Source of the DNA: Haliotis rubra
Taxonomy: Eukaryota
NCBI RefSeq assembly: GCF_003918875.1
Contig: NW_025765148.1
Location: forward strand, 186,001 to 250,000
Length of the DNA: 64,000 nt
Reading direction: 5' to 3'
In this document: in pieces, positions 44,001 to 64,000 of the stretch
Numbering within the stretch: the stretch's first letter is position 1
Layout of the letters: each line of letters begins with the position of its first letter
Program-made: the position numbers and the translations under genes
The notes under the pieces: model-generated
Told to the model about the DNA's origin: nothing
Database searches by the model: none
What the model saw: the letters and a program-made list of their open reading frames with translations, nothing else

Positions 44001-44268
44001 ACGGTCGGAGGGGCTGATTATCAGTGTGTTACTTCATATCACGGCCGGAAGTATGGTGATTGGCATGGGTGAAATCGATCCACGCCTAAACTACTAGGCC
44101 AAAACTGTTCACTCTGTTAATGTGTCATAAAGTATAATGATATGCAGGGCCATAATATGGAAGACACACAAAGAGGAGTTGCATCCCTTTCATGTGCCAG
44201 GATACGATGATCCCAGATCTACTCTAAAACATAAGCACCATGTCCTTGCTGATGGGCTACTCGTTGAT

Positions 44269-45685
44269 TACTTGTAATGGTACTCGGGGCTACTCGTGGA
44301 ATACTTGTGATGGTACTCGGGGCTACTCGTGGAATACTTGTGATGGTACTCGGGGCTACTCGTGGAATACTTGTGATGGTACTCGGGGCTACGGGTGGAA
44401 TACTTGTGATGGTACTCGGGGCTACGGGTGGAATACTTGTGATGGTACTCGGGGCTACGGGTGGAATACTTGTGATGGTACTCGGGGCTACGGGTGGAAT
44501 ACTTGTGATGGTACTCGGGGCTACGGGTGGAATACTTGTGATGGTACTCGGGGCTACTCGTGGAATACTTGTGATGGTACTCGGGGCTACGGGTGGAATA
44601 CTTGTGATGGTACTCGGGGCTACGGGTGGAATACTTGTGATGGTACTCGGGGCTACGGGTGGAATACTTGTGATGGTAATCGGGGCTACTCGTGGAATAT
44701 TTGTGATGGTACTCGGGGCTACGGGTGGAATACTTGTGATGGTACTCGGGGCTACTCGTGGAATACTTGTGATGGTACTCGGGGCTACCCGTGGAATACT
44801 TGTGATGGTACTCGGGGCTACTCGTGGAATACTTGTGATGGTACTCGGGGCTACGGGTGGAATAATTGTGATGGTACTCGGGGCTACGGGTGGAATACTT
44901 GTGATGGTACTCGGGGCTACTCGTGGAATACTTGTGATGGTACTCGGGGCTACTCGTGGAATACTTGTGATGGTACTCGGGGCTACGGGTGGAATACTTG
45001 TGATGGTACTCGGGGCTACTCGTGGAATACTTGTGATGGTACTCGGGGCTACTCGTGGAATACTTGTGATGGTACTCGGGGCTACGGGTGGAATACTTGT
45101 GATGGTACTCGGGGCTACGGGTGGAATACTAGTGATGGTACTCGGGGCTACTCGTGGAATACTTGTGATGGTACTCGGGGCTACTCGTGGAATACTTGTG
45201 ATGGTACTCGGGGCTACGGGTGGAATACTTGTGATGGTACTCGGGGCTACTCGTGGAATACTTGTGATGGTACTCGGGGCTACGGGTGGAATACTTGTGA
45301 TGGTACTCGGGGCTACTCGTGGAATACTTGTGATGGTACTCGGGGCTACGGGTGGAATACTTGTGATGGTACTCGGGGCTACTCGTGGAATACTTGTGAT
45401 GGTACTCGGGGCTACCCGTGGAATACTTGTGATGGTACTCGGGGCTACTCATGGAATACTTGTGATGGTACTCGGGGCTACCCGTGGAATACTTGTGATG
45501 GTACTCGGGGCTACTCATGGAATACTTGTGATGGTACTCGGGGCTACTCATGGAATACTTGTGATGGTACTCGGGGCTACCCGTGGAATACTTGTGATGG
45601 TACTCGGGGCTACCCGTGGAATACTTGTGATGGTACTCGGGGCTACCCGTGGAATACTTGTGATGGTACTCAGGGCTACTCGTGG
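44269..45685. repeat. 33-bp minisatellite, about 42 copies
   Basis: Unit acttgtgatggtactcggggctacNNNtggaat with NNN = tcg/ggg/ccg/tca. Confidence 0.95.
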
Positions 45686-46174
45686 GCTTCTCGTGGGTTG
45701 CTGGCACTTGTAACGTGTTTTTCTCTAGGTCTCTCTTTGGCTACTCGTCGGAAACACGCGGACTACTCGTGTCTTACTCAAGGGCTATTCTTGGGCTAAT
45801 CGCGTGTTACTCTTGTGTTAGTAAGCTCAAACTAGTTTTAATTAATTGTGATAATGTAGTTGTTATCCTGTCTTTCGCTGGCATCTTCTTAGAAAATATA
45901 AATTTACATGTTCTCAGTATATGACGTTTTTGTCGTCACGATATGGCTGAAATATTGCCGGTGTGACGTAAACTCTTTAACTCACTCACTCACTCACTGG
46001 CGCTTTGCATCAAAACGGTAAACGTCTGAGGCCTGCCCTACATCTGTCTTTCCTTCTATGATAACAGAGTTTTGATGTAAGTGACATACTGTCCACATTG
46101 GCATTATACCCTCCTTAGACACACCTCCATGTATATATTATAAACACGTGGCTGATCTTGTTTCTAATCTCGCT

Positions 46175-49604: not shown

Positions 49605-50507
49605 TATACTGCCCCATAAACCCCCCCACATGCACCATAGACCATCACGTTTGGTGTGAATGAACCTTGAACACTAATTATACACCGGATCTGTGCAGTG
49701 TTTACATTCAGTGGAGTTTGATCTAAATAAATAAACTATATAATGAACTGGGATCAATGTGGGATCGACTTGGCAAGGATATAGCTTATTGTCGATATAA
49801 CAAGGCCTCGTTGTCACTCAGTCTGCAAAAGGATTAATTGTCCATATTCATCATTAGACCATCGGATGTACCTGGCTCAGGTGTCAGCAGAGGGCTCACG
49901 GTGCACTGGCCTTTAATCGAAATGTGAAAACCGAAGAAACTTTGTTGGACAATAAAACTTTATTGGAGTGTGAAGTCTGTTCTAGATATTAAATTTTAAA
50001 TACGAAACGGAAGGAACTCAGACACCGTTTGGTTTGGTGGATGTTTGTTATAGGGGATGAAGTTTATTCAAAGCATCAACAACGGATTTCAGTGTCACCA
50101 CCAGGGGGCCAGCTGAGATTAACGGGGAGAAGCGACAAAACTCTTTCCACATCCATTAGAAATATCTGCTAACAATCGATTGTACAATTCTGACTATATA
50201 ATGAGTAGGTATTTGTTTCAGCAGCATTACATCTGAAACATGTTGTTTGAAAACAATCGAGTCTGGACCAGACAATCCAGTGATTGTCACCATGCGATAC
50301 GATGACAGAGCATGTGTTTATGAATCACTATGAAACAGTGATGATACCAGGTGTTCGCGAAAAGGTGAACGTATATCCTGCCACCAAAATGGATATGTGC
50401 CCAAATGACAAGCCTGGCTTGTGTCCCCCCAAATAACAAGCCTTGCTTGTATCCCCCAAATGACAAGCCTGGTTTGTTTCCGCCAAATGACATCCAGTAA
50501 ATGAGCT

Positions 50508-50764
50508 TCACAGATCACACATTCGCTGATAATGTGATGCATAATGCCTACCCGACAAACCGGCGGATACGCCATCCTTCGAAATAGAGCCTAGTGCGCA
50601 TTCTCTGCGCTGCGGGTAAAAGTCCACAGATCGACACAAGAAGACACTTTCGTCGAGGCATGCCTGAAGGCACTGATCCAACGTGACACGTGTTATCCTT
50701 CGTATGATACTTTCACCTATGTAGGATGAGGTTAAACGCTTGAACTGAGAAGAACAACCCTGCC
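50508..50764 (-). CDS. PAN-mucin-PAN gene copy 1, exon 4: C-terminal PAN/Apple domain
   Basis: gtttacag|GG phase 1; GQGCSSQFKR...TLDQCLQACLDESVFLCRSVDFYPQRRECALG...HYQRMCDL*. Confidence 0.88.
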
Positions 50765-51117
50765 CTGTAAACATGCAATGGTACCTATAAGTCATGGGAA
50801 ATACACAACAAGAGGGTTAAATATGTGACATTGCTGGAATACTGCGTGAAAGCGGCTTCCAAGTGATTAAATCATATACACGAAGGGAAAAGAAATCTGT
50901 TCTTGTCTCTGTTCTAATTTTGATCTGGATTTCATTCTCAATCATATATATTTATATTCCGACAAGGAATTTATATTAGACGGGTGTTGGATACAATCTA
51001 TAACATGAATAGTTTTCATATCTCGAACATACATTCGTGCATAGTTGCGTGCAGGCAGTCTCCTTTCATCTCATTCTTAAATCTTTCACAACGTAACCTG
51101 CATCACCAACAAGTTGA

Positions 51118-51277
51118 GGGCGGTGGGGTAGCCTAGTGGTTAAAGCGTCCCCTTGTCACGCCGAAGACCCGGGTTCGATTCCCCACATGGGTACAATATG
51201 TGAAACCCATTTCTGGTGTCCCCCGCCGTGATATTGCTGCAATATTGCTAAAAGAGGCGTAAACTACACTCACTCAC
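51118..51277 (+). mobile_element. Full-length SINE family A
   Basis: A and B boxes, (actc)n tail, TSD tcaccaaca[a/t]gttga. Confidence 0.92.
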
Positions 51278-51609
51278 TCACCAACATGTTGATTAATCCA
51301 CGCATATTGAATACCAACTATAACAACTGACCGTTTATCTAGCAAGAGAAAATCTGTTCTGAGCTTCTACAAGACATAACGTAAAGATCTTTACCCGTAT
51401 TTAAGCATCGGACTCCTCAATGAACAATAACCTGTTTGGTGATCAAATTAACAAAAACCACAATACAGCCCTGGGCATAAATTCGGTAATTACACATACT
51501 GAAAGGGAAAACAAGCACACCGAATTTATGTGAGCATAGATTAACAAATGGTACAATTTTTAAATTCTTTTTGGCTCCTAACAAAGAAAGAACCTGCATG
51601 TATTTCAAG

Positions 51610-52121
51610 AGTTAGTGAGTTACGATTTTAAGTCACATCGGCAGTATTTCCACCATATCCTTACAATAAAGTTATACATAATACATGAAGTTAATGTATT
51701 AAAACCTGTCAAGGAAGGACAGTAAATACAACTAGAATATCACAGATATAGATATAAAACTAGTGCCTAAATCTAAAACTTTGAAACTACTGAAGACAAT
51801 ACAATATTAAAACAGACTATAGATCGCCACCAACTGAAGGCAGTTCACCCTACTAGGGACCATGGGGACTTACAGTATTTTTGCTTCCTGCATGGACCCT
51901 AGCTGGATTTACACCATCATTTCAGATGTTGGCAATTTGTTAAAAAATCTATCCAATGGTATCGATGTCCAAAACATATTCCTAAAGATTTTGAAAACAA
52001 TTCTGTTTCTACTAAAAAACAGTTATCAAATGACAATTGACATGGTAAAAAAGATCCTTTAGTGAAATATTGATCCCTTGTGATGGGAAAATCAATACAG
52101 CCAAGCTGGACATGCTTGACC
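51610..52121 (-). mobile_element. 3' end of a Nimb/I-like LINE
   Basis: VKHVQLGCIDFPITRDQYF..KDLFYHVNCHLITVF C-terminal remnant; 3' UTR ending gatatgg.ggaaatactgccgatgtgac...actcact. Confidence 0.65.
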
Positions 52122-52399
52122 GCAGGTACTTCAATACCACCTCGTGGAATGTGTGGACGTTGTGGACGACTATGGTTAACTTGAACGTCAATGACACCGG
52201 GCCCCTTCTTTTGATGACAAAATCACAGATTCTACTCTGCTCTCGCGGAATGTGTCCGATTGCAAGATTTTCCCACTCGATAGAAACCGCGTGTGAGTCA
52301 TATGAATTTGAGAGGTCTGTTTCCGTATCAGGTACCTGACCTGTCTCTGGGTCCAGTGACTCATGTACACATGGACTCCTCTGATTGCACTATGAACGT

Positions 52400-52740
52400 G
52401 ACCGCCTCCGTGGTGTAGTGGTTAGAGCGTCCGACCGGAGAGCGAAAGGTCGCGGGTTCGATCCCCGACCGCGTCATACCAAAAAACGTTAAAATATGGC
52501 ATTTGTTGGTCCCTGCCTGGCGCTCGGCATTAATGGGTACAACAAGGACTGGTCGGCTCGGAGTCAGTATAATGTGTCTGAGTGGGGTATTCATGCTTCA
52601 CTGCGGCATGGTATCTCACTGGGCTAGCACTATAAAACCAGCTTATACAAGGGGCCGCAAATACACATACACACGCATGTACGTCGTCATATGAGCGAAA
52701 TATTCTCAAGCACGACGTTAAACCCAATTTCACCTCACCT
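52400..52740 (+). mobile_element. Full-length SINE family B
   Basis: 12-bp TSD cactatgaacgt at 52388-52399 and 52741-52752. Confidence 0.92.
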
Positions 52741-52909
52741 CACTATGAACGTTGTAAATACCGACGTTCGCCATGTGCTTTTACAAAGGGACATCACCCC
52801 CAACAATGAAATTATGAATCTAAATTTAGGCCCTTGAACATCCCGGTATGGCAGACTTTTAGGGAAAGTTTTTTAACCGGGCAACATACTTAACTGTCCA
52901 TTATGTTAC

Positions 52910-53497
52910 CTGTTGTGGTCTGTACAGAAGTAGTGCCTTCTTCTCCCGTAGCTGTGGTCGGTACAGAGGTAGTGCCTTTTTTGCCTGTGACTCTGGTCGG
53001 TACAGAGGTAGTGCCTTTTTTGCCTGTGACTCTGGTCGGTACAGAGGCAGTACCTTCTTTGCCTGTGACTCTGGTCGGTACAGAGGTAGTGCCTGTTTTG
53101 CCTGTGACTCTGGTCGGTACAGACCTAGTGCCTTCTGTGCCTGTGACTCTGGTCGGAACAGAGGTAGTGCCTTCTTTGCCTGTGACTCTGGTCGGTACAG
53201 AGGTAGTTCCTTCTTCTCCCGTGACTCTGGTCGGTACAGAGGTAGTGCCTTCTTCTCCCGTGACTCTGGTCGGTACAGAGGTAGTGCCTTCTTCTCCCGT
53301 AGCTCTGGTCGGTACAGAGGTAGTACCGTCTTCTCCAGTGGCTGTGAATGGTACAGAGGTAGTTCCGTCTTCTCCCGTGGCTGCGGTCGGTACAGAGGTA
53401 GTTCCTTCTTCTCCTGAGACTTTGGTCGGTACAGAGGTAGTCCCTTCTTCTCCCGTGGCTGTTGATGGTACAGAGGGAAGAGGTGTTATATCCTTGG
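52910..53497 (-). CDS. PAN-mucin-PAN gene copy 1, exon 3: Thr-rich mucin-like linker, 14 repeats of 13 aa (39 bp)
   Basis: tcaatgttgacag|CC ... ACAG|gtaaca; 588 nt, phase 1/1; (VPTRVTGEEGTTS)n. Confidence 0.85.
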
Positions 53498-54096
53498 CTG
53501 TCAACATTGAAGACAAAGAACTGAATTAAACAAGATATTTTGACCAATTGACTAAGTTTAACCATACAGGGATACACAGGTATATACGTCCTAGGTTTAA
53601 CACTAAAAAGATATCCATATCATTAAACTCTGCTTTTTCTATTCGGCATGCCGTTAACATATTCGCTTTTACTTCCACTGCTTTACTATCTAACTTTCAT
53701 TGGTTGGTCCACACTATGTCACTTTTTCTGATTTTATCCTCTGACATCCATTGGTTATTCCACACTATATCTGCCTGACGTCTAGCCATTATACGTATAG
53801 TAGCAGTAGTCGGGCAGTATAAAAGGAACAGTTTATAAGTACGATTTCGCAGATAATACTTCACTACATATTGAGATTAAGTTTTACAGTTGAGAGACAA
53901 AACACACGCAAACAACCTCCTCATGGTTCGGATTATCTCCTTATCTCCGACAGTACCTATAATGCTGCACAGCAACAAGATAAAAGCCTCGAGAAAAGCC
54001 AGGATCTTGAGAAGGGTTTCAGCGAGTTTATTCTAAGATACCGATGAGGCTAGGATAATCTCTTTGTTTAAATCTACTTAAATGTGACTGGCTTAC

Positions 54097-54178
54097 CTGA
54101 CCTAAGGCACAGATACCCTTGGTGAGCAACAGGTGCACACGTCTCTGATGGTTGGCACGTGCACATCCGCCCAGACAC
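54097..54178 (-). CDS. PAN-mucin-PAN gene copy 1, exon 2: short four-Cys module
   Basis: ttctcttcag|GTG ... CAG|gtaagc; 82 nt; VSGRMCTCQPSETCAPVAHQGYLCLRS; conserved in copy 2. Confidence 0.88.
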
Positions 54179-54630
54179 CTGAAGAGAAAACTCTCATTAA
54201 ATGACCTGTGTGATTTAACTTTTTAGTACAACACTAAGTACCACTTGTTTATTGGAAAGACGAGGTTGCAGAAACATCCTTCACAAATTCCCTTCTTTGT
54301 GTTTATCCTTATAAATCTTTGCAACAGATGTCATTGCCCAGTCAGTAAGATGTTTTAGGCACAGAATTGTGTTTTCGTGTTTGCTGTTTAACGATGAACT
54401 AACCAATATTCCAGTCTGGTCTGGATCAGACAATCCGATGATTGATGTCATGAAACTCGCAACGGGAATATGATGTCTTTCTGGTCAAGGAAATCCTATT
54501 ACGAAAACTCATGAGTTGCTGACGATCAAGTGTATACTTATATTTTATTGTGAATTTTGATGTTCTGGAAAACCATTTTCAAGAGGATTTACAAAGATGT
54601 CTTGTATCAGATTGCCATATTCGTACTTAC

Positions 54631-55044
54631 TTCCTCTGCAGACAGTTCAATGTAGACGGAGTCGTCATCAGGTCTCACGGCGGTAGGGAAGTCGGACTCC
54701 GTCACCCTGTTGAGGTCACACACAGCAGGATGTGCCTTCCAGCGCCAGTTCACAGAAACACAGTAGGGCGAGTACAAACACAACGTGTAGCACTGTACCC
54801 GTGCAGTCACAGTCCAGCTACTGACCACATGGTCAGGGACAATAGCCAGCCCAGGGACACTTCTAACCCCTTCCGTCAGCCCTATAGCTCCAGCCAACAC
54901 AGATATGGCCAGTGTATAGGCGGTGTGAGTGACTATTGTTGTAGCCAGTGTTGAGGCGGTGTGGGCCACCATTGTTGTAGCCAGCGTCGATGCGGTGTGA
55001 GCCACCATTGTTGAAGCCGGCGTCGAGGCGGTGTGCTCCACCAT
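54631..55044 (-). CDS. PAN-mucin-PAN gene copy 1, exon 1: repeated leader, signal peptide and PAN/Apple domain
   Basis: MVEHTASTPAST repeats, TLAISVLAGAIG, VQCYTLCLYSPYCVSVNW...VCDLN...SVYIEL; donor GAA|gtaagt; TATATAAAA on minus at 55170-55162; start codon ambiguous (three in-frame ATGs). Confidence 0.85.
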
Positions 55045-56111
55045 TGTTGAAGTCGGTGTCGAGGCGGTGTATACCTTCACAACTGCAGCCAACAGAGTGG
55101 ATGCCTAAACTTTCCTTCTCCCAAAGAGTCTGCATCTGGACCTACAGATCTGTACAGGACATTTTATATATTACCGATATATGTTAAATAATACATTTGA
55201 ATGTATCAATGAACGATCGATTACATATAAACAGCGAACACGTGATCAATATTGACCTATTAAAATAATTAATTGGTTTGTAATCGGTTACAGGCGACCT
55301 CATCTTTGCATACATAATGTACAACAGGTTTATGTGTGACTCGCCATGTCTGGGATCATTTCAACAAGAACCCTGTGGATAGTTCGAACGTTCGATACCA
55401 GGCAGCTTTCTGAAATGCTAAAGCAATGGTAAGGGACAGTGGGTAGTCTGATGGTTACAATGGTTCGCTCGTCACACCGAAGTCTCGGTTTCGATTCCCA
55501 AAATGGTTACAATGTTTGAAACACACTTTAGGAGCTGTGATAGTGCTGGAATAATGCTATACGTAGAGTAAGACAAAATAGTGCTGCACTACAAACATAT
55601 GCGGATTGCAAGAATCAGTTGGTCCAATTGGCTCTGTTTCTTGCAGATATGGCCATGAGCCAGAGCATATCATGGTTGAGTCACAGCCTCCGGGTTCTTC
55701 TAATGCGGAATAGGGCCCGTGGGGTAGCCTAGTTGTTTAGCGTCCACTCGTCACGCTGAAGACCCGGGTTCGATTCCCCACATCCAAGTGTAATAGAGGC
55801 GGTGCTGTGGCCTGGTTATTAAAGCGTTCGCCTGTCAAGTCGATGACACTGGTTCGATTCCCCATATGGGTACAATGTGTGAAGCCCATTCCTGGTGTCT
55901 CCCGCTGTGATTTTGGCGGAATATTGCTAAAAGCGGCGCAAAACTCAACTAACTCACTCTCTCGAATGCGGAATAAACTTTTGTATACCAGTCATAAAAT
56001 AATATCCAGGTATTTTTTCTTCGTAAGTTGTTTCTCGTGCTCGGCACATTTCTTCCGAAAATATATCCATAGAATACTAATCATCAAAGGTTTGGGCAGT
56101 GGGGTAGCCTA

Positions 56112-56620
56112 TAGTCTGTTTGCAGTCAAAACGTACCGATTAATTCCACTTTAAACAGAAAAATAAATCAAATAAAGTGAAATTAAGATTGCGAATCCTC
56201 ATAATTTGACCTTGCCAATTAAACATATAAATTTCAGAATTTTATTCAACTTGTTTAACAGACGATCATAGATTCAAACCGCTATTATTGGTTTGTATTA
56301 CAAGGGAGTAAACGCAGTAATTGGAACAGTGATACAAATGCACGTGCAGTACGTGATGAGAGTTAACTTAGACCAACCGTACTTCTTCTCGGTGTTTCAT
56401 TTAATGTGCATACCACCTTGTAACACGAACCAACAATAGCAATTTGAAACTATGATCGTTTGTTCAACAACTTTTATCCAAGTTGAATAAAATTCTGAGA
56501 TTTAAATGTTCAATTGGCAAGGTAAAATCATGAGGATTCGTACTTCTAATTTCACTTTATTTGATTTATGTTTTTGTTTAAAGTGAAATTCATCGGTACG
56601 TTTTCACTGCAAACAGACTA
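56112..56620. mobile_element. Foldback MITE with about 200-bp imperfect inverted arms
   Basis: tagtctgtttgcagtcaaaacgtaccgat... / ...atcggtacgttttcactgcaaacagacta. Confidence 0.88.
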
Positions 56621-57368
56621 AAGCGGAGAATCGGTCTTCGGCGTCACGGACGAACGCTTTAACCACTAAGCCACATCAACGCCCCTGAACGTTACCAAGA
56701 ACCCTACGTAAAGTTGACTTTCTTCTTAGTGTCCTATTTGTATGTGTATATAACGCAGCCAGCGAACAACAAAAGCAGAACAGTAATTAAGATACACCTA
56801 AACGTATCCTTCTAAAATCGAAGTCACTTCGATGTGAAATCGAGTCCAGATCGATAATTATTTCCTAATTAAGGCTGACACTACTGTCAATTAAAGCCCC
56901 CCTCATCGTTATTACATGTAGTCATGTATAATGTGTGCCAGCAGAGTCTGGCTCCTCCCACAGGCGGTGCCGGGACATGCTGGCTGGTCCAATGACAGGA
57001 GATTGAATTATATTAACACTTCACCTATTACATAATTTCTAAGACATACTAGTCACAAAACAAGTTCAATATTTTCTGTATTAAAAACACAAACATTATA
57101 CATGCATCAGTAGATACACGTTACTGACGAATCTATGTTAGATAATATGTAATTGGTCGTTTATTAACACACCGAAACAGCCCAGATCAAATTCATTGTT
57201 AGCACATATTGGTAAAAGATAAAACGTTCTGTACAGTTTATATATCCAGATGCAGGCTGGTTGGAAGAAGGAGTTTATGTCTCCACTGTAGTAGGTGATG
57301 GTAGGTGGCGTACACCGCCTCTACAATTAAACAATCTGGCTCACACCGCATCGACGCTGGCTTCAACA

Positions 57369-57710
57369 ATGGTGGCCCACACCGCCTCAACACTGGCTAC
57401 AACAATAGTCACTTACACCGCCTATACACTGGCCATATCTGTGTTGGCTGGAGCTATAGGGCTGATGGAAGGGGTCAGAAGTGTCCCCGGTCTGGCTATT
57501 GTCCCTGACCATGTGGTCAGTAGCTGGACTGTGACTGCACGGGTACAGTGCTACACGTTGTGTTTGTACTCGCCCTACTGTGTTTCTGTGAACTGGCGTT
57601 GGAAGGCACACCCTGCTGTATGTGACCTCAACAAGGTGACGGAGTCCCACTTCCCTACCGCCGTGAGATCTGATGACGACTCCGTCTACATTGAACTGTC
57701 TGCAGAGGAC
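57369..57710 (+). CDS. PAN-domain gene copy 2, exon 1: signal peptide and PAN/Apple domain
   Basis: Inverted near-identical paralogue of 54631-55044; donor GAC|gtaagt. Confidence 0.85.
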
Positions 57711-58186
57711 GTAAGTGTGATTTTAACAATCTGATACAAGACAATTTCATAAATCCTCCTGATAAGGGGATTCCGGGCTATCCAAATTCACAATAAAATA
57801 TAGTATACAATTGACCGTCAGCAACTCATGAGTTGCCGTAAAAGGCGACAAAGTAAATTTAGTTTCTACAAAGGTTATCTGATACAAGACAACGCGGTAG
57901 TTCCTCCGGATAAAGATTTCCGGACAGTCGAGATTCCCAATAAAAATAAAGCTGCTTGACTGACAATTACCATTGTCCGGGGAACTGGTCCTCAGCAACC
58001 CATCAGCAACATCGTACAGCTGTAATACTGCTGAGGATATATTCAAAATTGTACAACCGACTTTTAGCAGACATTTTCTTATGCATGTTGAAGGGTTTTG
58101 TCGCTTTTATTTAAGCCTACGATGACCATAATCATCCATTAGAGATTTGTTATGCGCCATAAAAACTCCAGGCACTTGGTGTCAGT

Positions 58187-59710
58187 AGATTTGTTATGCG
58201 CTCATGGCGCTCACACAAAATTTAAAAAACACTGCAGTAGAGGTGTTATATTTTCACTGGTATATCAATCCTTATAGAACTTTTGGAAGAGATGAGTCTT
58301 TATGCAGCTTTTAAAGATTGTCAATGATGGAGATTTCTTTATTCCCAGGGGAAGATCGTTCCACAGAGTTGGGGCCATGTAAGCAAATGATCTCTGTCCA
58401 TACTTTTTGAGGCGGGATTTGGGTACTTTAAGAAGTAACTGATCAGCAGATCTTAGTGTCCGAGAAGGTTCATATTTCTCAATCAATTCTGTCAGATAGG
58501 CAGGAGCTGTTTGATTGACACATTTATATGTCAATGTGAGAATCTTGTATTGGACTCGAGCTTGGACTGGGAGCCAGTGTAGGGAAGTTAGCACTGGTGT
58601 TATATGTGCACACTTCCTCGTTCGGGTCACGATCCGTGCTGCAGTGTTTTGGACCCGTTGGAGTTTCGCAAACTGTTCCTGGGTTAGATTTCCCAACAAG
58701 CTATTTGCATAATCAAGTCTTGTCAATACAAGTGTTCTTGCTAGCATATGTGCCATATCAGTAGAAAGAAGATCTCTAATGGAACCAATATTCCTTAGAT
58801 GAAAATAGCAAGAGTGACAGATTTTAGATATGTGATCATCCATTGATAGACTGTTGTCAAAAACCACACCAAGATTCTTGACACATTCCGAAACTGTAAT
58901 CTCAGAGTCTCCCACTCGAACGGTCTTCACACCAGTGGCCAACCGTTTAGGCAGAGTTCCTGCAAGAAGAGCCTCTGTTTTGCTGTCATTTAGTTTCAGC
59001 TTGTGTATAGTCATCCAGGACTTGATACTATCAGTGCACACTTCCAGTTCAGTCACTGAGTGGCATGCATTTTGGGGTAGAAAACTTTAAGTAACTGTGT
59101 ATCATCTGCGTACATATGATGATTTACACTTGAGGGTGAAAGAGATTTGCCCAGATCAGAAGTATACAGTGTGAATAGGATGGACCCAAGGACAGATCCT
59201 TGAGGAACACCATACTTTAAGATGGCAGTTTCAGAATTTGAGTCACCGATACAAACTGACTGGACTCGACCAGAAAGGTGTGACATAAACCATTTCAGTA
59301 CAGTTCCATCAATACCTATCGACTCCCTCAGTGTTGCTGATAGTTGTTCATGATCGATGGTATCAAATGCCGCCGAGAGATCTAACAATACCAACAAGCC
59401 AACACACCCACCATCCACAGATGTCAACAAATCATTCATAATGCGAAGCAGCGCTGTTTCAGTACTGTGTTCTGGCCTATATGCAGACTGATGCTTATCC
59501 AGTAAGCCAAATCTGTCAAGATGTAAGGAGAGTCTACGTTTCACAGCCTTTTCAAGCACTTTTGAAAGGAATGATAGGTTAGACACAGGACGGTAGTTAC
59601 TGAGGATCGACACGTCTAAGTCCTGTTTCTTTAGAAGAGGTTTGACCACTGCCTATTTGAGATTAACAGGAACTATTCCTGTTGATAGACTCTTATTGAC
59701 AATCCAAGTC
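58187..59710 (-). mobile_element. L2-clade LINE, 5'-truncated, one frameshift near 59055, in intron 1 of copy 2
   Basis: NYRPVSNL, HSTETALL, LLDLSAAFDTIDH, GVPQGSVLG, YADDTQL, LHWLP, RSFAYMAPTLWNDLP. Confidence 0.93.
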
Positions 59711-59713
59711 ATC

Positions 59714-59910
59714 AAAAGATGGCATATCCCCCTCAGGCCCCCACTTATTTGCAACAATCATGTGAATGGTACCCCTTCAAGGATCGTAAAGGGTTGTCTG
59801 CATCTAGAGATGCGTCAGCTCACTAAAGATCGGAAACGGTGCCGTACCCTAACCCTAACACTAACCCTAAGGATCGTAGACTCCCTCCTTAAGGGAGACA
59901 GAGGTATTTT
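59714..59910. mobile_element. Possible Helentron-associated (HINE-like) short element
   Basis: (ccctaa)n tract at 59847-59870 followed by hairpin ctccctccttaagggag and tatttt. Confidence 0.35.
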
Positions 59911-60339
59911 CGCGATTTATAGATCGATACTCTTGATCACTGATTGATTTACAATCAATTATCCACAGATCGGAGCTGATGGCAGCGTTAGACAAACAAA
60001 AGATCAAACCATTGAATTTACGAATGGTGTTTATCGCTCAGAGAGTTCTTCACTGAGACAAAGGGCGGTGGGGTAGCCTTGTGGTTAAAACGTTCGATCG
60101 TCACGCCGAGGACCGGAGTTCTATTTCCCATATGGGTGCAATGTGTGAAGCCAATTTTTGGTGTCCCCCGGGAATATTGCTCAAAGAGGCGTAAAATTAA
60201 ATTCACTCACTCACTGAGATATGTAATTATAACTTCGTCTTTCCACGAAAGAGTTGAGTTTACTTATTACATGGACCGTCAAATATTGTTGTACTAAAAA
60301 GTAAATCACACAGGTCGTTTAAAGAGAGTTTTTCTTCAG

Positions 60340-60421
60340 GTGTCTGGGCGGATGTGCAGGTGCCAACCATCAGAGACGTGTGCACCTGTTGCTCATCAAG
60401 GGTATCTGTGCCTTAGGTCAG
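60340..60421 (+). CDS. PAN-domain gene copy 2, exon 2: four-Cys module
   Basis: tttcttcag|GTG ... CAG|gtaagt; VSGRMCRCQPSETCAPVAHQGYLCLRS. Confidence 0.88.
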
Positions 60422-61066
60422 GTAAGTCAGTCACTGTTGACTAAAACTGAACGAAGAGGCTATTCCAGTATGGCTTCCTTTGCACAGTCGGAAGAGGAAA
60501 TACCCCGAGCTGAAAAATGTGGCGCAAGAAATTGTGTTTAAATCTCTCATTTTTAAAACTTCTTACGCGTGACATTTATCTGCGAATTAACTACACAAAA
60601 AGTGTTTGCTCCTCGGCATTGAAACTGGCACCCTCTGTGTGGAAAAAACAGATCTGTTTCCAGAAGACTTTCTTTACATGTAAACATCGGAAACTCTGAA
60701 CTTCTACACCGCAATTCAAAATTAACAGCTGAATTTCATGATCCATCGATCACCTGATTGTTTATAGTCCGCCGTCGCATGGCAACAGTACGGTATTGCG
60801 GCGTTGCGCTGTAAAAACATTTTCGGTCAAATTATGTGAATGGAGGGTGCTCCCAATAGGCTAGATACGGCGTCCCTGATTGTCAGTAATGTATTCATAC
60901 ACTTTGATAAATGTTTGTAAGGAAGTAATGCTGGGAATTATTTTGCCCTGGCGTTTTCTAAATCAAGTATGGACAGCAACCTCAAACAATATGGTCAGAT
61001 TTCAACCATAGCTTGTTGAAATAGCTTGCCAGTATGTACATATTAAATGTAGTCCTTGGTCTACAG

Positions 61067-61165
61067 GGTTCAGAGAGGACACAACTACAGGGGGTGGAAG
61101 AGAGGAAGATGAGACACCTGCTACCCCAGTACCGACCACAGCCAGAGAAGAGGGTAGGACAGCAG
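61067..61165 (+). CDS. PAN-domain gene copy 2, exon 3: short Thr/Glu linker
   Basis: ggtctacag|GG ... CAG|gtaaga; 99 nt, phase 1/1; GFREDTTTGGGREEDETPATPVPTTAREEGRTA, includes one VPTTA.EEG unit. Confidence 0.72.
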
Positions 61166-61639
61166 GTAAGATGATGAAGAACCTAATAAAGATACATAAA
61201 TCCAATCAGCAAGTATTGATGGCATCCAGCATATTGAGCACCTTGTCTTGAAAGTGGATCCACATCTACTCAAGCTTCACAAACGCAATATGGTTTTCAT
61301 GCTGCAGTGCATGAACTAATATAAACCTAGATATATTTGACTCTAGTTAAATAATGTGACTAGCACGCAAGAAATACCTCCTTTATCGAGCTCACGCGGA
61401 CTATGTGTCAATTTGAGCGTGACAGTTGTGCCTTGTCGCTCGCCTGACAGTCATGCCTGTAGGTTTCCAGCTAACTGAAGCAGGGGGGAGAATTTGAAAC
61501 AGACGTCATCTGCGGCTACAAATGAGACTAGGGTTTACACTATTCGGTATCAACCAGTTACCTTAAAGACTTGTTTAGAATGGGTCGTTTTATCACTACG
61601 TTACTCATCACCATCATTAGTCTCTACTACGTTACTTCA

Positions 61640-64000
61640 TCATAACATCGTCAGTACGTCATAGGTTTGTATACCACGTTACTCCATCACAACATCGTCA
61701 GTAAGTCATAGGCTTGTAAACTACGTTACTTCATCATAACATCGTCTGTACGTCATAGGCTTGTAAACTACGTTATTCCATCACAACAACGTCTACGTTA
61801 CTCCATCACTACATCGTCTGTAAGTCATAGGCTTGTAAACTACGTTAACCATCACTACATCGTTCTACGTTACTTCATCATAACATCGTCTGTACGTCAT
61901 AGGCTTGTTCGTCATTGGCTTGTAAAACTACGTTACATCGTCATCATCGGCTTGTAAACCATGTTACTCCATCACCACATCACATCGTCAGTACGTCATA
62001 GGCTTGTAAACTACGTTACTTCATCACACATCATCGTCATAGGGTTTGTACGTCATAGGCTTGTAAACTACGTTACTCCATCACCAACATCGTCAGTACG
62101 TCATAGGCTTGTAAACTACGTTACTCCATCACAACATCGTCAGTACGTCATAGGCTTGTAAACTACGTTACTTCATCATAACATCGTCTGTACGTCATAG
62201 GCTTGTAAACTACGTTACTCAATCACCACATCGTCAGTACGTCATAGGCTTGTAAACTACGTTACTCCATCACAACATCGTCTGTACGTCATAGGCTTGT
62301 AAACTACGTTACTCCATCACCACATCGTCAGTACGTCATAGGCTTGTAAACTACGTTACTCCATCACTACATCGTCAGTACATCATAGGTTTGTATACTA
62401 CGTTCCTCCATCACCACATCGTCAGTACGTCATAGGTTTGTAAACTACGTTACTCCATCACCACATTGTCAGTACGTCATAGGTTGGTATACTACGTTCC
62501 TCCATCACCACATTGTCTGTACATCATAGGTTTGTATACTACGTTCCTCCATCACCACATCGTCAGTACGTCATAGGTTTGTATACTACGTTCCTCCATC
62601 ACCACATTGTCAGTACGTCATAGGTTTGTATACTACGTTACTCCATCACCACATTGTCAGTACGTCATAGGTTTGTATACTACGTTACTCCATCACCACA
62701 TCGTCAGTACGTCATAGGTTTGTATACTACGTTCCTCCATCACCACATCGTCAGTACGTCATAGGTTTGTATACTACGTTCCTCCATCACCACATCGTCA
62801 GTACGTCATAGGTTTGTATACTACGTTCCTCCATCACCACATCGTCAGTACGTCATAGGTTTGTATACTACGTTCCTCCATCACCACATCGTCAGTACGT
62901 CATAGGTTTGTATACTACGTTACTCCATCATCACATCGTCAGTACGTCATAGGTTTGTATACCACGTTCCTCCATCACCACATCGTCAGTACTTCATAGG
63001 TTTGTATACTACGTTCCTCCATCACCACATCGTCAGTACGTCATAGGTTTGTATACTACGTTCCTCCATCATCACATCGTCAGGACGTCATAGGTTTGTA
63101 TACCATGTTCCTCCATCACCACATTGTCAGTACTTCATAGGTTTGTATACTACGTTCCTCCATCATCACATCGTCAGGACGTCATAGGTTTGTATACTAC
63201 GTTCCTCCATCACCACATCGTCTGTACGTCACAGGTTTGTATACTACGTTCCTGCATCACTACATCGTCAGTACGTCATAGGTTGGTATACTACGTTCCT
63301 CCATCACCACATCGTCAGTACGTCATAGGTTTGTATACTACGTTCCTCCATCACCACATTGTCTGTACGTCATAGGTTTGTATACTACGTTCCTCCATCA
63401 CTACATCGTCAGTACGTCATAGGTTTGTATACTACGTTCCTCCATCACCACATTGTCTGTACGTCACTGGTTTGTATACTACGTTCCTCCATCACTACAT
63501 CGTCAGTACGTCATAGGTTTGTATACTACGTTCCTCCATCACTACATCGTCTGTACGTCATAGGTCTGTATACTACGTTCCTGCATACTACGTTCCTCCA
63601 TTTTGTATACTACGTTCCTCCATCACCACATTGTCAGTACGTCATAGGTTTGTATACTACGTTCCTCCATCACTACATCGTCTGTACGTCATAGGTTTGA
63701 ATACTACGTTCCTCCATCACTACATCGTCAGTACGTCATAGGTTTGTATACTACGTTCCTCCATCACCACATTGTCTGTACGTCATAGGTTTGTATACTA
63801 CGTTCCTCCATCACCACATTGTCAGTACGTCATAGGTTTGTATACTACGTTCCTCCATCACCACATTGTCTGTACGTCATAGGTTTGTATACTACGTTCC
63901 TCCATTACTACATCGTCAGTACGTCATAGGTTTGTATACCACGTTCCTCCATTACTACATCGTCAGTACGTCATAGGTTTGAATACTACGTTCCTGCATC
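61640..64000. repeat. 47-bp minisatellite running off the window
   Basis: Unit catcgtcagtacgtcataggtttgtatactacgttcctccatcacca. Confidence 0.95.

Follow-up and report, generated by a model that had tools for sequence, protein, structure and literature searches.

The locus considered here, in a 64,000-nt stretch of the Haliotis rubra genome (the window), raises the question of whether two look-alike coding regions that point away from each other are two real genes and, if so, what kind of protein they encode. An earlier note, made from the letters alone, had proposed a head-to-head pair of secreted PAN/apple genes with near-identical heads and very unequal mucin-like linkers. Copies 1 and 2 do lie on opposite strands, with their ATGs 2325 nt apart, close to the 2.3 kb first estimated (Table 1). 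The region between them carries TATA-like motifs, read from the sequence, about 125 to 130 nt upstream of each ATG, as well as SINE copies and a central hairpin (56109-56623). Copy 1 splices in frame across the four exons that had been predicted (414 + 82 + 588 + 257 = 1341 nt), giving 446 codons and a stop, with GT donors and AG acceptors at every exon border and no stops or frameshifts along its length. It is apparently absent from RefSeq and the public protein sets searched and seems to be unannotated. Copy 2 is RefSeq LOC124266103 (XP_046556871.1), the first 114 residues of which are identical to the translation of exon 1 and the model of which splices exons 1 to 3 exactly as predicted.

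Table 1. Features of the divergent gene pair (positions in the window unless marked as contig positions)
Feature	Position	Strand	Description
Copy 1 exon 4	50508..50764	-	257 nt including stop; C-terminal six-Cys PAN/apple domain
Copy 1 exon 3	52910..53497	-	588 nt, phase 1/1; Thr-rich mucin-like linker
Shared homology tract, copy 1 side	54060..55200	-	
Copy 1 exon 2	54097..54178	-	82 nt, phase 0/1; short Cys-rich module with four Cys
Copy 1 exon 1	54631..55044	-	414 nt; repeat with ATGs, hydrophobic signal-type segment, divergent PAN; GT donor
Intergenic region between divergent starts	55045..57368	.	2.3 kb
Shared homology tract, copy 2 side	57187..60458	+	
Copy 2 exon 1	57369..57710	+	342 nt from the sole in-frame ATG; signal-type segment and PAN
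Copy 2 exon 2	60340..60421	+	82 nt; junction used in XP_046556871.1
Copy 2 exon 3	61067..61165	+	99 nt, phase 1/1, 33 aa; junctions as in XP_046556871.1
Copy 2 terminal exon	contig 254555-254835, 4.6 kb past the window end	+	281 nt; PAN_1, 37.4 bits

The completeness of copy 2 depends on its 3' end. XP_046556871.1 reads past the exon 3 donor, stops 28 codons into intron 3, and lacks a terminal PAN. If transcripts do end in this 7.4-kb intron, which consists mostly of a 47-nt satellite and a microsatellite, then copy 2 would be a decaying or truncated gene with a one-headed or useless product, and only copy 1 would be two-ended. The loss of the upstream ATGs found in the copy 1 repeat fits such decay, as does the terminal PAN, whose last Cys lies 8 residues out of place because the end of the exon is one base off register relative to the "CPL-stop" ending in H. 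cracherodii. However, the terminal PAN exon, which the earlier note had suggested seeking beyond position 64000, is present, in frame, and preceded by a good acceptor, and its PAN_1 score exceeds that of copy 1. With it, the four exons of copy 2 are open and in frame (342 + 82 + 99 + 281 = 804 nt) and encode a predicted product of 267 aa. Exons 1 and 2 also show a dN/dS of 0.33, and the one-base anomaly falls within an AAA run, in an assembly built on long reads. A truncated copy 2 is therefore a possibility that we regard as doubtful. No further linker exon was found in intron 3 of copy 2, and the two products stay unequal in length, as originally described.

Both copies are predicted to encode proteins of the secreted type. 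A hydropathy scan found a single hydrophobic stretch, which is N terminal, with a strongly hydrophobic core of 11 to 15 residues, and neither a transmembrane segment nor a GPI-type tail, in agreement with the absence of a membrane span noted before. The signal peptide that had been assigned to copy 1 stands in part: the segment is of the signal type, but a 36-nt (12-aa) tandem repeat (54908-55070) with an ATG in every unit precedes it and places three in-frame ATGs in exon 1. Counted from the first of these, the hydrophobic segment opens only at residue 42, an unusual position for a signal that is cleaved; the third Met (54972) is probably the conserved start. The proteins might instead be type II membrane proteins, cell surface PAN-mucin stalks held by an uncleaved N-terminal signal anchor. 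The roughly 40 residues that precede the segment in copy 1, the approximately 70 residues that precede it in the H. cracherodii models, and a mean hydropathy over 19 residues of 1.5 to 1.6, near the usual membrane threshold, are in keeping with an anchor. Against this stand the shortness of the core and the small-residue motif A-G-A that follows it, which is compatible with a signal peptidase site. The H. rufescens model (XP_048251838.1), which opens directly with a 19- to 22-residue hydrophobic leader, and copy 2 start 0 to 18 residues ahead of the segment, and the extra residues elsewhere derive from a tandem repeat that arose recently or from upstream exons, which are possibly 5' untranslated sequence. 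We regard membrane anchorage as improbable.

The claim that a PAN domain lies at each end of both proteins was borne out by Pfam PAN_1 (PF00024; curated cutoff, 21.4 bits). The C-terminal matches are well above the cutoff (34.2 bits and an E value of 2.3e-8 for copy 1 exon 4; 37.4 bits for copy 2). The N-terminal domain is marginal in H. rubra, scoring 21.9 bits in exon 1 of copy 1, 21.5 bits in exon 1 of copy 2, and 19.2 bits, under the cutoff, in the full XP_046556871.1. It is clearer in relatives, reaching 35.9 bits in H. cracherodii P0008 (among XP_071110873-5), and H. rufescens XP_048251838.1 has two PAN_1 stretches. Four core Cys with C-x3-C ... C ... C spacing, all present in copy 1 exon 1, are invariant in the alignments of both the N-terminal and the C-terminal PANs, and in a profile-profile alignment of the two domains they fall in register (E value of 8e-4). 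Every family member has an even number of Cys. Copy 1 exon 4, with six Cys, contains the outer first-to-last pair; in the H. rufescens C-terminal PAN the first and last Cys are both lost, which is the expectation for a C1-C6 pair. The N-terminal PAN lacks this outer pair unless exon 2 contributes a Cys. The four-Cys module that had been described in exon 2 holds for copy 1, but the Californian relatives have only two Cys there, and the module matches no Pfam family. The best match of the N-terminal domain profile to a solved structure was an insignificant one to a kallikrein apple domain (E value of 0.2), and both AlphaFold2 models, built from 4-sequence alignments, have low pLDDT (43 to 44).

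Between the two PANs, the linkers differ as reported, with 196 residues in copy 1 and 33 in copy 2. Copy 1 exon 3 consists of a 39-nt (13-aa) tandem repeat (14.4 copies, 88% matches) rich in T (31%), S (9%), and P (8%), of which copy 2 exon 3 is a short, degenerate form. The repeat unit is 13, 14, and 15 aa long in the three long-linker Haliotis genes, the first being that of copy 1. Dense O-glycosylation and an extended shape are probable for the Thr-rich spacer.

H. rufescens XP_048251838.1 and H. cracherodii XP_071110873-5 have four matching coding exons joined at identical residues, and the Haliotis relatives run alike from the signal through PAN, Cys module, and Thr-rich repeat to the second PAN. 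Among the H. cracherodii isoforms, X1 and X3 include a Gln at the exon 2 acceptor that X2 omits, a single-residue difference that suggests transcript support in that species. The family is restricted to Haliotis: at E values below 1e-10, matches were limited to two clusters among 1.84 billion representatives, both from Haliotis. No inverted partner gene was found within 10 kb at the two Californian loci (H. rufescens and H. cracherodii). The earlier note did not recognize a named gene, and the names in RefSeq ("mucin-2-like" in H. rufescens and "proteoglycan 4-like" or uncharacterized in H. cracherodii) are automatic and based on repeat composition. Pfam searches of the exons, the H. rubra and H. 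rufescens models, and H. cracherodii P0008 returned PAN_1 only. A gel-forming mucin of the MUC2 type (no VWD, C8, TIL, or cystine-knot match), proteoglycan 4 or lubricin (no somatomedin-B or hemopexin match), and a LET-653-type PAN-mucin-ZP protein (no ZP match) were each rejected on the Pfam results for the exons and relatives.

The design is nevertheless familiar. The apple domains of plasma kallikrein and factor XI and the PAN modules of plasminogen and HGF have the PAN/apple Cys framework in common with the abalone proteins, but these are multidomain protease or growth factor proteins without mucin spacers. In lubricin (proteoglycan 4), globular binding domains flank a long O-glycosylated mucin domain, which forms an end-anchored hydrated brush or bridge. 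This likeness is an analogy of design with no homology claimed, since lubricin is far larger and its ends are somatomedin-B and hemopexin domains. In Caenorhabditis elegans, LET-653, a secreted component of the apical matrix that has no membrane anchor, combines two PAN domains, a Pro/Thr/Ser-rich region, and a ZP domain; its PAN domains bind the luminal matrix dynamically, and the size of its mucin-like region varies by isoform (PMC4970718). The sequence relationship with the abalone proteins is limited to the PAN domain. Moreover, the LET-653 PANs lie side by side at one end, whereas the abalone proteins have one PAN per end, and the function of LET-653 is carried by the ZP domain, which the abalone proteins lack. 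The abalone-only family, itself unstudied, is real and confined to its lineage, and it belongs to a known design.

The two H. rubra copies differ in how far they have diverged along their length. Over exons 1 and 2 they are nearly identical, as first observed, at 96 to 98% nucleotide identity, with 12 differences over the 342 exon 1 positions that the copies share (96.5% identity), 2 of the 82 sites of exon 2, and a protein identity of 94.7%. Besides these two exons, the shared tract covers about 155 nt of upstream DNA, the two ends of intron 1, and the first 37 nt of intron 2, after which homology stops; on the copy 2 side, a LINE fragment and a SINE that have inserted into intron 1 make it longer. 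In the 5' flank of intron 1, identity is 82%. The genome holds exactly two copies of exon 1 and two of exon 2, with no close copy of exon 1 found elsewhere in it, and exon 1 identity is 95% within H. rubra versus 68 to 71% between lineages. The C-terminal PAN exons of the two copies, by comparison, share 40% identity, within the range of 33 to 45% seen in all family pairs, which form a star tree with very long branches. On these comparisons the pair is an evolutionary mosaic, in which the promoter-proximal region and exons 1 and 2 are either young or homogenized. Gene conversion or purifying selection had been offered as possible reasons for the high identity of exons 1 and 2, and both forces now seem to act there: dN/dS is 0.33 (dS of 0.069, dN of 0.022), and synonymous sites have diverged less than the neighboring intron and upstream sequence (p values from 0.001 to 0.06); conversion is the putative mechanism of homogenization.

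The divergence of the remaining exons admits a neutral reading, in which the 3' two-thirds drift unconstrained in a young, dispensable, or dying pair that has no specific ligand. When copy 1 was compared with a contig from another individual, exon 4 differed at 11 nonsynonymous sites and 1 synonymous site, and 7 of the 8 changed codons in the first part of exon 3 altered the residue; for such allelic replacements in exon 4, a relaxation of constraint is as open an explanation as diversifying selection (p of 0.19). The star tree of the C-terminal PANs, the absence of copy 1 from public protein sets, and the state of the transcript evidence point the same way: no spliced RNA reads were found for H. 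rubra, the runs containing the locus being genomic DNA, and one possible RNA run yielded a single 157-nt contig inside exon 1 that is assignable to either copy. Neutral decay, however, sits poorly with the intact reading frame of copy 1 and with the other individual's exon 4, which also has neither a stop nor a frameshift. All four C-terminal PANs, whatever their lineage, have the four core Cys and a CRS-x-D motif unchanged, and the outer Cys have been lost solely as a pair. Drift also does not predict that exon 4 should diverge more between individuals (12/257) than its noncoding flanks (4-7/332). We therefore consider unconstrained drift distinctly unlikely.

The reading that we favor, with a probability of roughly 0.55, is that these are two real paralogous genes, restricted to Haliotis and of mosaic history, that encode extracellular, two-ended PAN glycoprotein adaptors. 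Each would be a small protein that begins with a cleavable signal and the conserved, divergent PAN, continues with the short Cys module and the Thr-rich spacer, and ends in a fast-evolving six-Cys PAN. The conserved N-terminal PAN may grip a host partner that does not vary, located in mucus, in the apical matrix, or at a cell surface. The C-terminal PAN, itself variable, would bind a ligand that varies, and a stiff, glycosylated spacer (196 versus 33 aa) would fix the distance between the two ends. Cross-linking with a reach set by linker length had been proposed in the earlier note, with mucus, shell matrix, immunity, or gamete recognition as possible settings, and such a bridging function is here a prediction. 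Conversion between the two inverted genes, or else a partial duplication of recent date, would have kept the 5' tract (core promoter and exons 1 and 2) alike, with purifying selection acting on it, while the linker and 3' PAN exons would have diverged long ago or very fast.

A further reading, which is tentative and on balance rather unlikely, is that the pair forms a diversified recognition system, with the N-terminal PAN as a constant handle and with positive selection on the C-terminal PAN, as a probe, and on spacer length. Abalone are a classic model of the fast evolution of gamete recognition. If this reading is true, the handle would be homogenized by gene conversion, maybe independently in the Australian and Californian lineages, while the probe and spacer would diversify both between paralogues and between alleles, and the proteins would represent a soluble pattern- or partner-recognition adaptor in abalone immunity or at the egg-sperm interface.

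The divergent PAN-mucin-PAN pair of Haliotis rubra comprises two real genes, and the domain reading first proposed for them is correct; the interpretation that the earlier note placed on them is supported in part. The coding exons of copy 1, on the minus strand, were found by pattern and their flanks then inspected, and exons were used singly as queries in the searches. All introns of copy 1 begin with GT and end with AG (phases 0, 1, and 1), and the exons sum to 1,341 nt, or 446 codons plus a stop, matching exactly the exon lengths of the in-frame, four-exon model in the earlier note. Pfam PAN_1 scores 34.2 bits in exon 4 and 21.9 bits in exon 1, both above the cutoff of 21.4, which places a PAN domain at each end of the product as claimed. 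The 196-aa Thr-rich linker between them was likewise recovered, exon 3 being a tandem repeat with a period of 39 nt and 14.4 copies, which encodes 13-residue units composed of 31% Thr, 9% Ser, and 8% Pro. The only hydrophobic segment lies at the N terminus. Exon 1 of copy 1 opens with 100 nt that form a 36-nt tandem repeat carrying one ATG per unit; this repeat extends the stretch before the signal-type segment and is missing from the Californian relatives H. rufescens and H. cracherodii. Because these relatives and copy 2 begin at or after the last repeat ATG, the conserved start of copy 1 is probably at position 54972, with a product of 422 aa. Directly 3′ of the copy 1 stop codon is a 27-nt tandem repeat (3.4 copies), in which 28 nt are missing from the contigs of another individual; it is therefore a site of length polymorphism within the probable 3′ untranslated region. 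Copy 1 is apparently a previously unannotated gene.

The best protein match is the H. rubra RefSeq entry XP_046556871.1 ("uncharacterized protein LOC124266103"), which equals exons 1, 2, and 3 of the plus-strand copy 2 exactly and then continues for 28 codons past the exon 3 donor. An independent gene model thus uses the predicted junctions as far as the one leading into the short phase 1/1 linker exon, and lacks a proper end. This linker exon is a two-unit degenerate form of the Glu/Gly/Thr-rich repeat of copy 1. When the whole 1.38-Gb assembly was searched with copy 1 exon 4, a single good match besides the query itself emerged, located on the same contig, in the orientation of copy 2, and 4.6 kb beyond the end of the window. 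Its acceptor is a pyrimidine-rich AG in phase 1, and the frame closes over 342+82+99+281 nt (804 nt, 267 aa). The terminal PAN exon that the earlier note had proposed to look for beyond position 64000 therefore exists, with a PAN_1 score of 37.4 bits, and the RefSeq model, from which this exon is missing, needs correction. Intron 3 of copy 2 spans 7.4 kb and is chiefly a 47-nt satellite of about 6 kb with a TCCAT-type microsatellite inside it; no further linker-like exon that could equalize the two linkers was found within it. The last codons of copy 2 (L007:4800-4835; L007 is the same contig beyond the window end) are one base off register relative to the "Cys-Pro-Leu-stop" of H. cracherodii, at an AAA run, so that the final Cys falls 8 residues later; the shift is possibly an assembly error.

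Coordinates of the gene models and neighboring features (window positions unless prefixed; L007, same contig beyond the window end; C258, contig coordinates; L022, H. cracherodii locus)
Feature	Position	Strand	Details
Copy 1 exon 1	54631-55044	-	414 nt
Copy 1 exon 2	54097-54178	-	82 nt
Copy 1 exon 3	52910-53497	-	588 nt
Copy 1 exon 4	50508-50764	-	257 nt including stop
Copy 2 exon 1	57369-57710	+	342 nt
Copy 2 exon 2	60340-60421	+	82 nt
Copy 2 exon 3	61067-61165	+	99 nt, phase 1/1, 33 aa
Copy 2 exon 4	L007:4555-4835 = C258:254555-254835	+	281 nt; PAN_1 37.4 bits
36-nt ATG-bearing repeat, copy 1 exon 1 start	54908-55070		12-residue unit, 4.5 units
36-nt ATG-bearing repeat, copy 2 exon 1 start	57330-57433		12-residue unit, ~2.5 units
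27-nt tandem repeat	50400-50492		3′ of copy 1 stop
LINE fragment	58265-59649	-	copy 2 intron 1; two adjoining ORFs, upstream ORF RVT_1 87.7 bits
SINE	60062-60214		copy 2 intron 1
Hairpin	56109-56623		arms 56109-56328 and 56393-56623, 64-nt loop
47-nt satellite	61625-64000 and L007:1-3530		copy 2 intron 3
TCCAT-type microsatellite	L007:208-1615		inside the satellite
Minisatellite	44240-45799		1.5 kb, period ~33 nt
Retroelement remains	L007:5463-8608		downstream of copy 2
Linker-type repeat fragment	L022:28002-28250		frameshifted

In a genome-wide search, exon 1 and exon 2 each occur in exactly two copies. The near identity of these exons between the genes, as originally described, is borne out by 12 differing sites in the shared 342 nt of exon 1 (6 synonymous and 6 nonsynonymous) and 2 in the 82 nt of exon 2; pooling the codon differences of both exons gives a dS of 0.069, a dN of 0.022, and a ratio of 0.33. 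Noncoding similarity is lower than that of the exons, at 72 to 76% over about 150 nt upstream and, in intron 1, 82% in the first 140 nt and 94% in the last 70 nt, and homology ends 37 nt inside intron 2. Synonymous sites are less diverged than the flanks (P = 0.012 for the 5′ intron flank alone, 0.06 for the two intron flanks together, and 0.001 once the upstream DNA is added). Nothing aligns at the DNA level outside this shared 5′ tract, and the terminal PAN exons share 40 to 41% protein identity. An assembly artefact, such as a fold-back or a join of two haplotypes, was rejected as the source of the pair because transposon insertions set the copies apart, introns 2 and 3 do not align between them, and the identity of their last exons is only 40%. 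Intron 1 measures 2.6 kb in copy 2 versus 452 nt in copy 1 because a LINE fragment and a SINE have been inserted. A palindrome of the whole locus was also rejected, the intergenic arms being unalignable outside the 5′ tract of the genes and a hairpin at the center. This hairpin, with arms that are 82 to 88% complementary, lies about halfway between the divergent genes with inverted SINE heads on its flanks, and it may represent a foldback element or what is left of the center of the inverted duplication.

The window contains many tRNA-derived SINEs, one LINE fragment, and satellites, and it has no N. The 1.5-kb minisatellite is open in multiple reading frames on each strand and looks to be outside the PAN genes. 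The retroelement remains downstream of copy 2 include an integrase core (rve, 31.6 bits, minus strand), just below the cutoff, and a plus-strand, SCAN/gag-like ORF of 346 aa.

A HMMER search against 1.84 billion representatives returned only two clusters with an E value below 1e-10, those of XP_046556871.1 and of a 430-aa H. rufescens protein named "mucin-2-like" (XP_048251838.1). Word-index searching added H. cracherodii isoforms of 424 to 435 aa (XP_071110873-5), one of which is named "proteoglycan 4-like"; with XP_046556871.1, XP_048251838.1, and copy 1 exon 4 as queries, the only new entry was one of the H. cracherodii proteins, exon-sized queries being blind to the 446-aa product of copy 1. 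At their own loci, the genes of H. rufescens and H. cracherodii share the four-coding-exon layout of the H. rubra genes, with identical residues across the junctions. The H. cracherodii isoforms differ by one Gln at the exon 2 acceptor, which is present in X1 and X3 and absent from X2, the sort of difference typical of transcript data. The H. rufescens protein opens with a hydrophobic leader of 19 to 22 residues. The repeat units of the three long-linker genes are 13, 14, and 15 residues long, and the linker arrays have therefore expanded independently. The four-Cys module assigned to exon 2 holds for H. rubra, but the Californian species have only two of these residues. The Cys count is even in every family member, and the C-terminal PAN of the H. 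rufescens protein has lost both its first and its last Cys, and both features would be consistent with a disulfide-bonded extracellular protein. Within 10 kb of the H. rufescens and H. cracherodii genes, no inverted partner gene was found. A frameshifted fragment of linker-type repeat lies 3.6 kb downstream of the H. cracherodii gene, with no PAN exon within 6 kb after it, and it may be what remains of an additional copy, or else a pseudo-exon.

The two ends of the protein have evolved unevenly. Exon 1 protein and C-terminal PAN identities are 95% and 40% between the copies within H. rubra, 91% and 42% between H. rufescens and H. cracherodii, and 68 to 71% and 33 to 45% between H. rubra and the Californian species. 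Between H. rufescens and H. cracherodii, the DNA surrounding exon 1 is only about 80% identical, while the exon 1 dS is 0.069. Since the divergence between these two species follows the pattern inside H. rubra, there are hints that their genes are paralogues whose 5′ exons have been homogenized in each lineage. Orthology could not be assigned from the C-terminal PAN tree, which is star-shaped, with very long branches and a bootstrap value of 49, so that the duplication is not datable relative to speciation. In another individual labeled H. rubra, copy 1 exon 4 differs at 12 sites among the differences listed, with 3 more in the contig; 11 of the 12 are nonsynonymous and 1 synonymous, with no loss among the six Cys. 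Between these individuals, exon 4 exceeds its flanks in divergence (12/257 versus 4 to 7/332), with statistics that are not firm (P = 0.19 for the replacement excess and 0.02 to 0.10 for exon 4 against the flanks). Judged from these comparisons, the C-terminal PAN surface appears to bear no sign of purifying selection, and the pattern is suggestive of diversifying selection.

The H. rubra read contigs, which represent genomic DNA of another individual and cross the exon-intron borders, contain no splice joints at the predicted sites. One run that is only presumed to be RNA yielded one contig of 157 nt, inside exon 1 and with four mismatches, which could belong to either copy. AlphaFold2 models of exon 1 and exon 4 from four-sequence alignments reached a pLDDT of 43 to 44, too low for use. 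Among solved structures, the two profiles found a kallikrein apple domain as the sole match, which was not significant (E value, 0.2), the C-terminal profile giving none, and the ESM Atlas offered generic PAN clusters alone, all scoring below 0.85. In a profile-profile comparison, the N- and C-terminal domains align Cys to Cys (E value, 8e-4). In the literature searched, no mention was found of the family accessions or of a PAN-mucin-PAN protein in abalone mucus or shell proteomes.

Our best guess is that these proteins act as secreted, O-glycosylated, two-ended adaptors, in which a spacer of 196 or 33 residues would separate a conserved PAN domain from a variable one at the opposite end. The nearest functional precedent is LET-653 of Caenorhabditis elegans, whose PAN domains tether the protein dynamically to the luminal matrix and whose Pro/Thr/Ser region differs in length between isoforms (PMC4970718). 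LET-653 acts via a ZP domain, which the abalone proteins lack, and the likeness to lubricin is one of design only. Identity with a gel-forming mucin or with proteoglycan 4 was ruled out because the defining domains of both are missing in Pfam searches, and the automatically assigned names, "mucin-2-like" and "proteoglycan 4-like," give a misleading picture. The PAN-plus-mucin kind of protein is already known; the family itself is new, restricted to the genus Haliotis, and partly annotated, and it is distinctive in its two-ended layout, its inverted pair, and its homogenized 5′ part joined to very divergent 3′ parts. The PAN pair does not open a long-standing question. If the reading is true, abalone hold unstudied, genus-restricted, two-ended PAN glycoproteins with one conserved and one variable end and a length-variable minisatellite as the spacer. 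They would provide a compact natural system for studying how an extracellular adaptor is tuned by the length of its spacer and the divergence of its end domains and would test whether gene conversion and diversifying selection act on separate exons of one pair.
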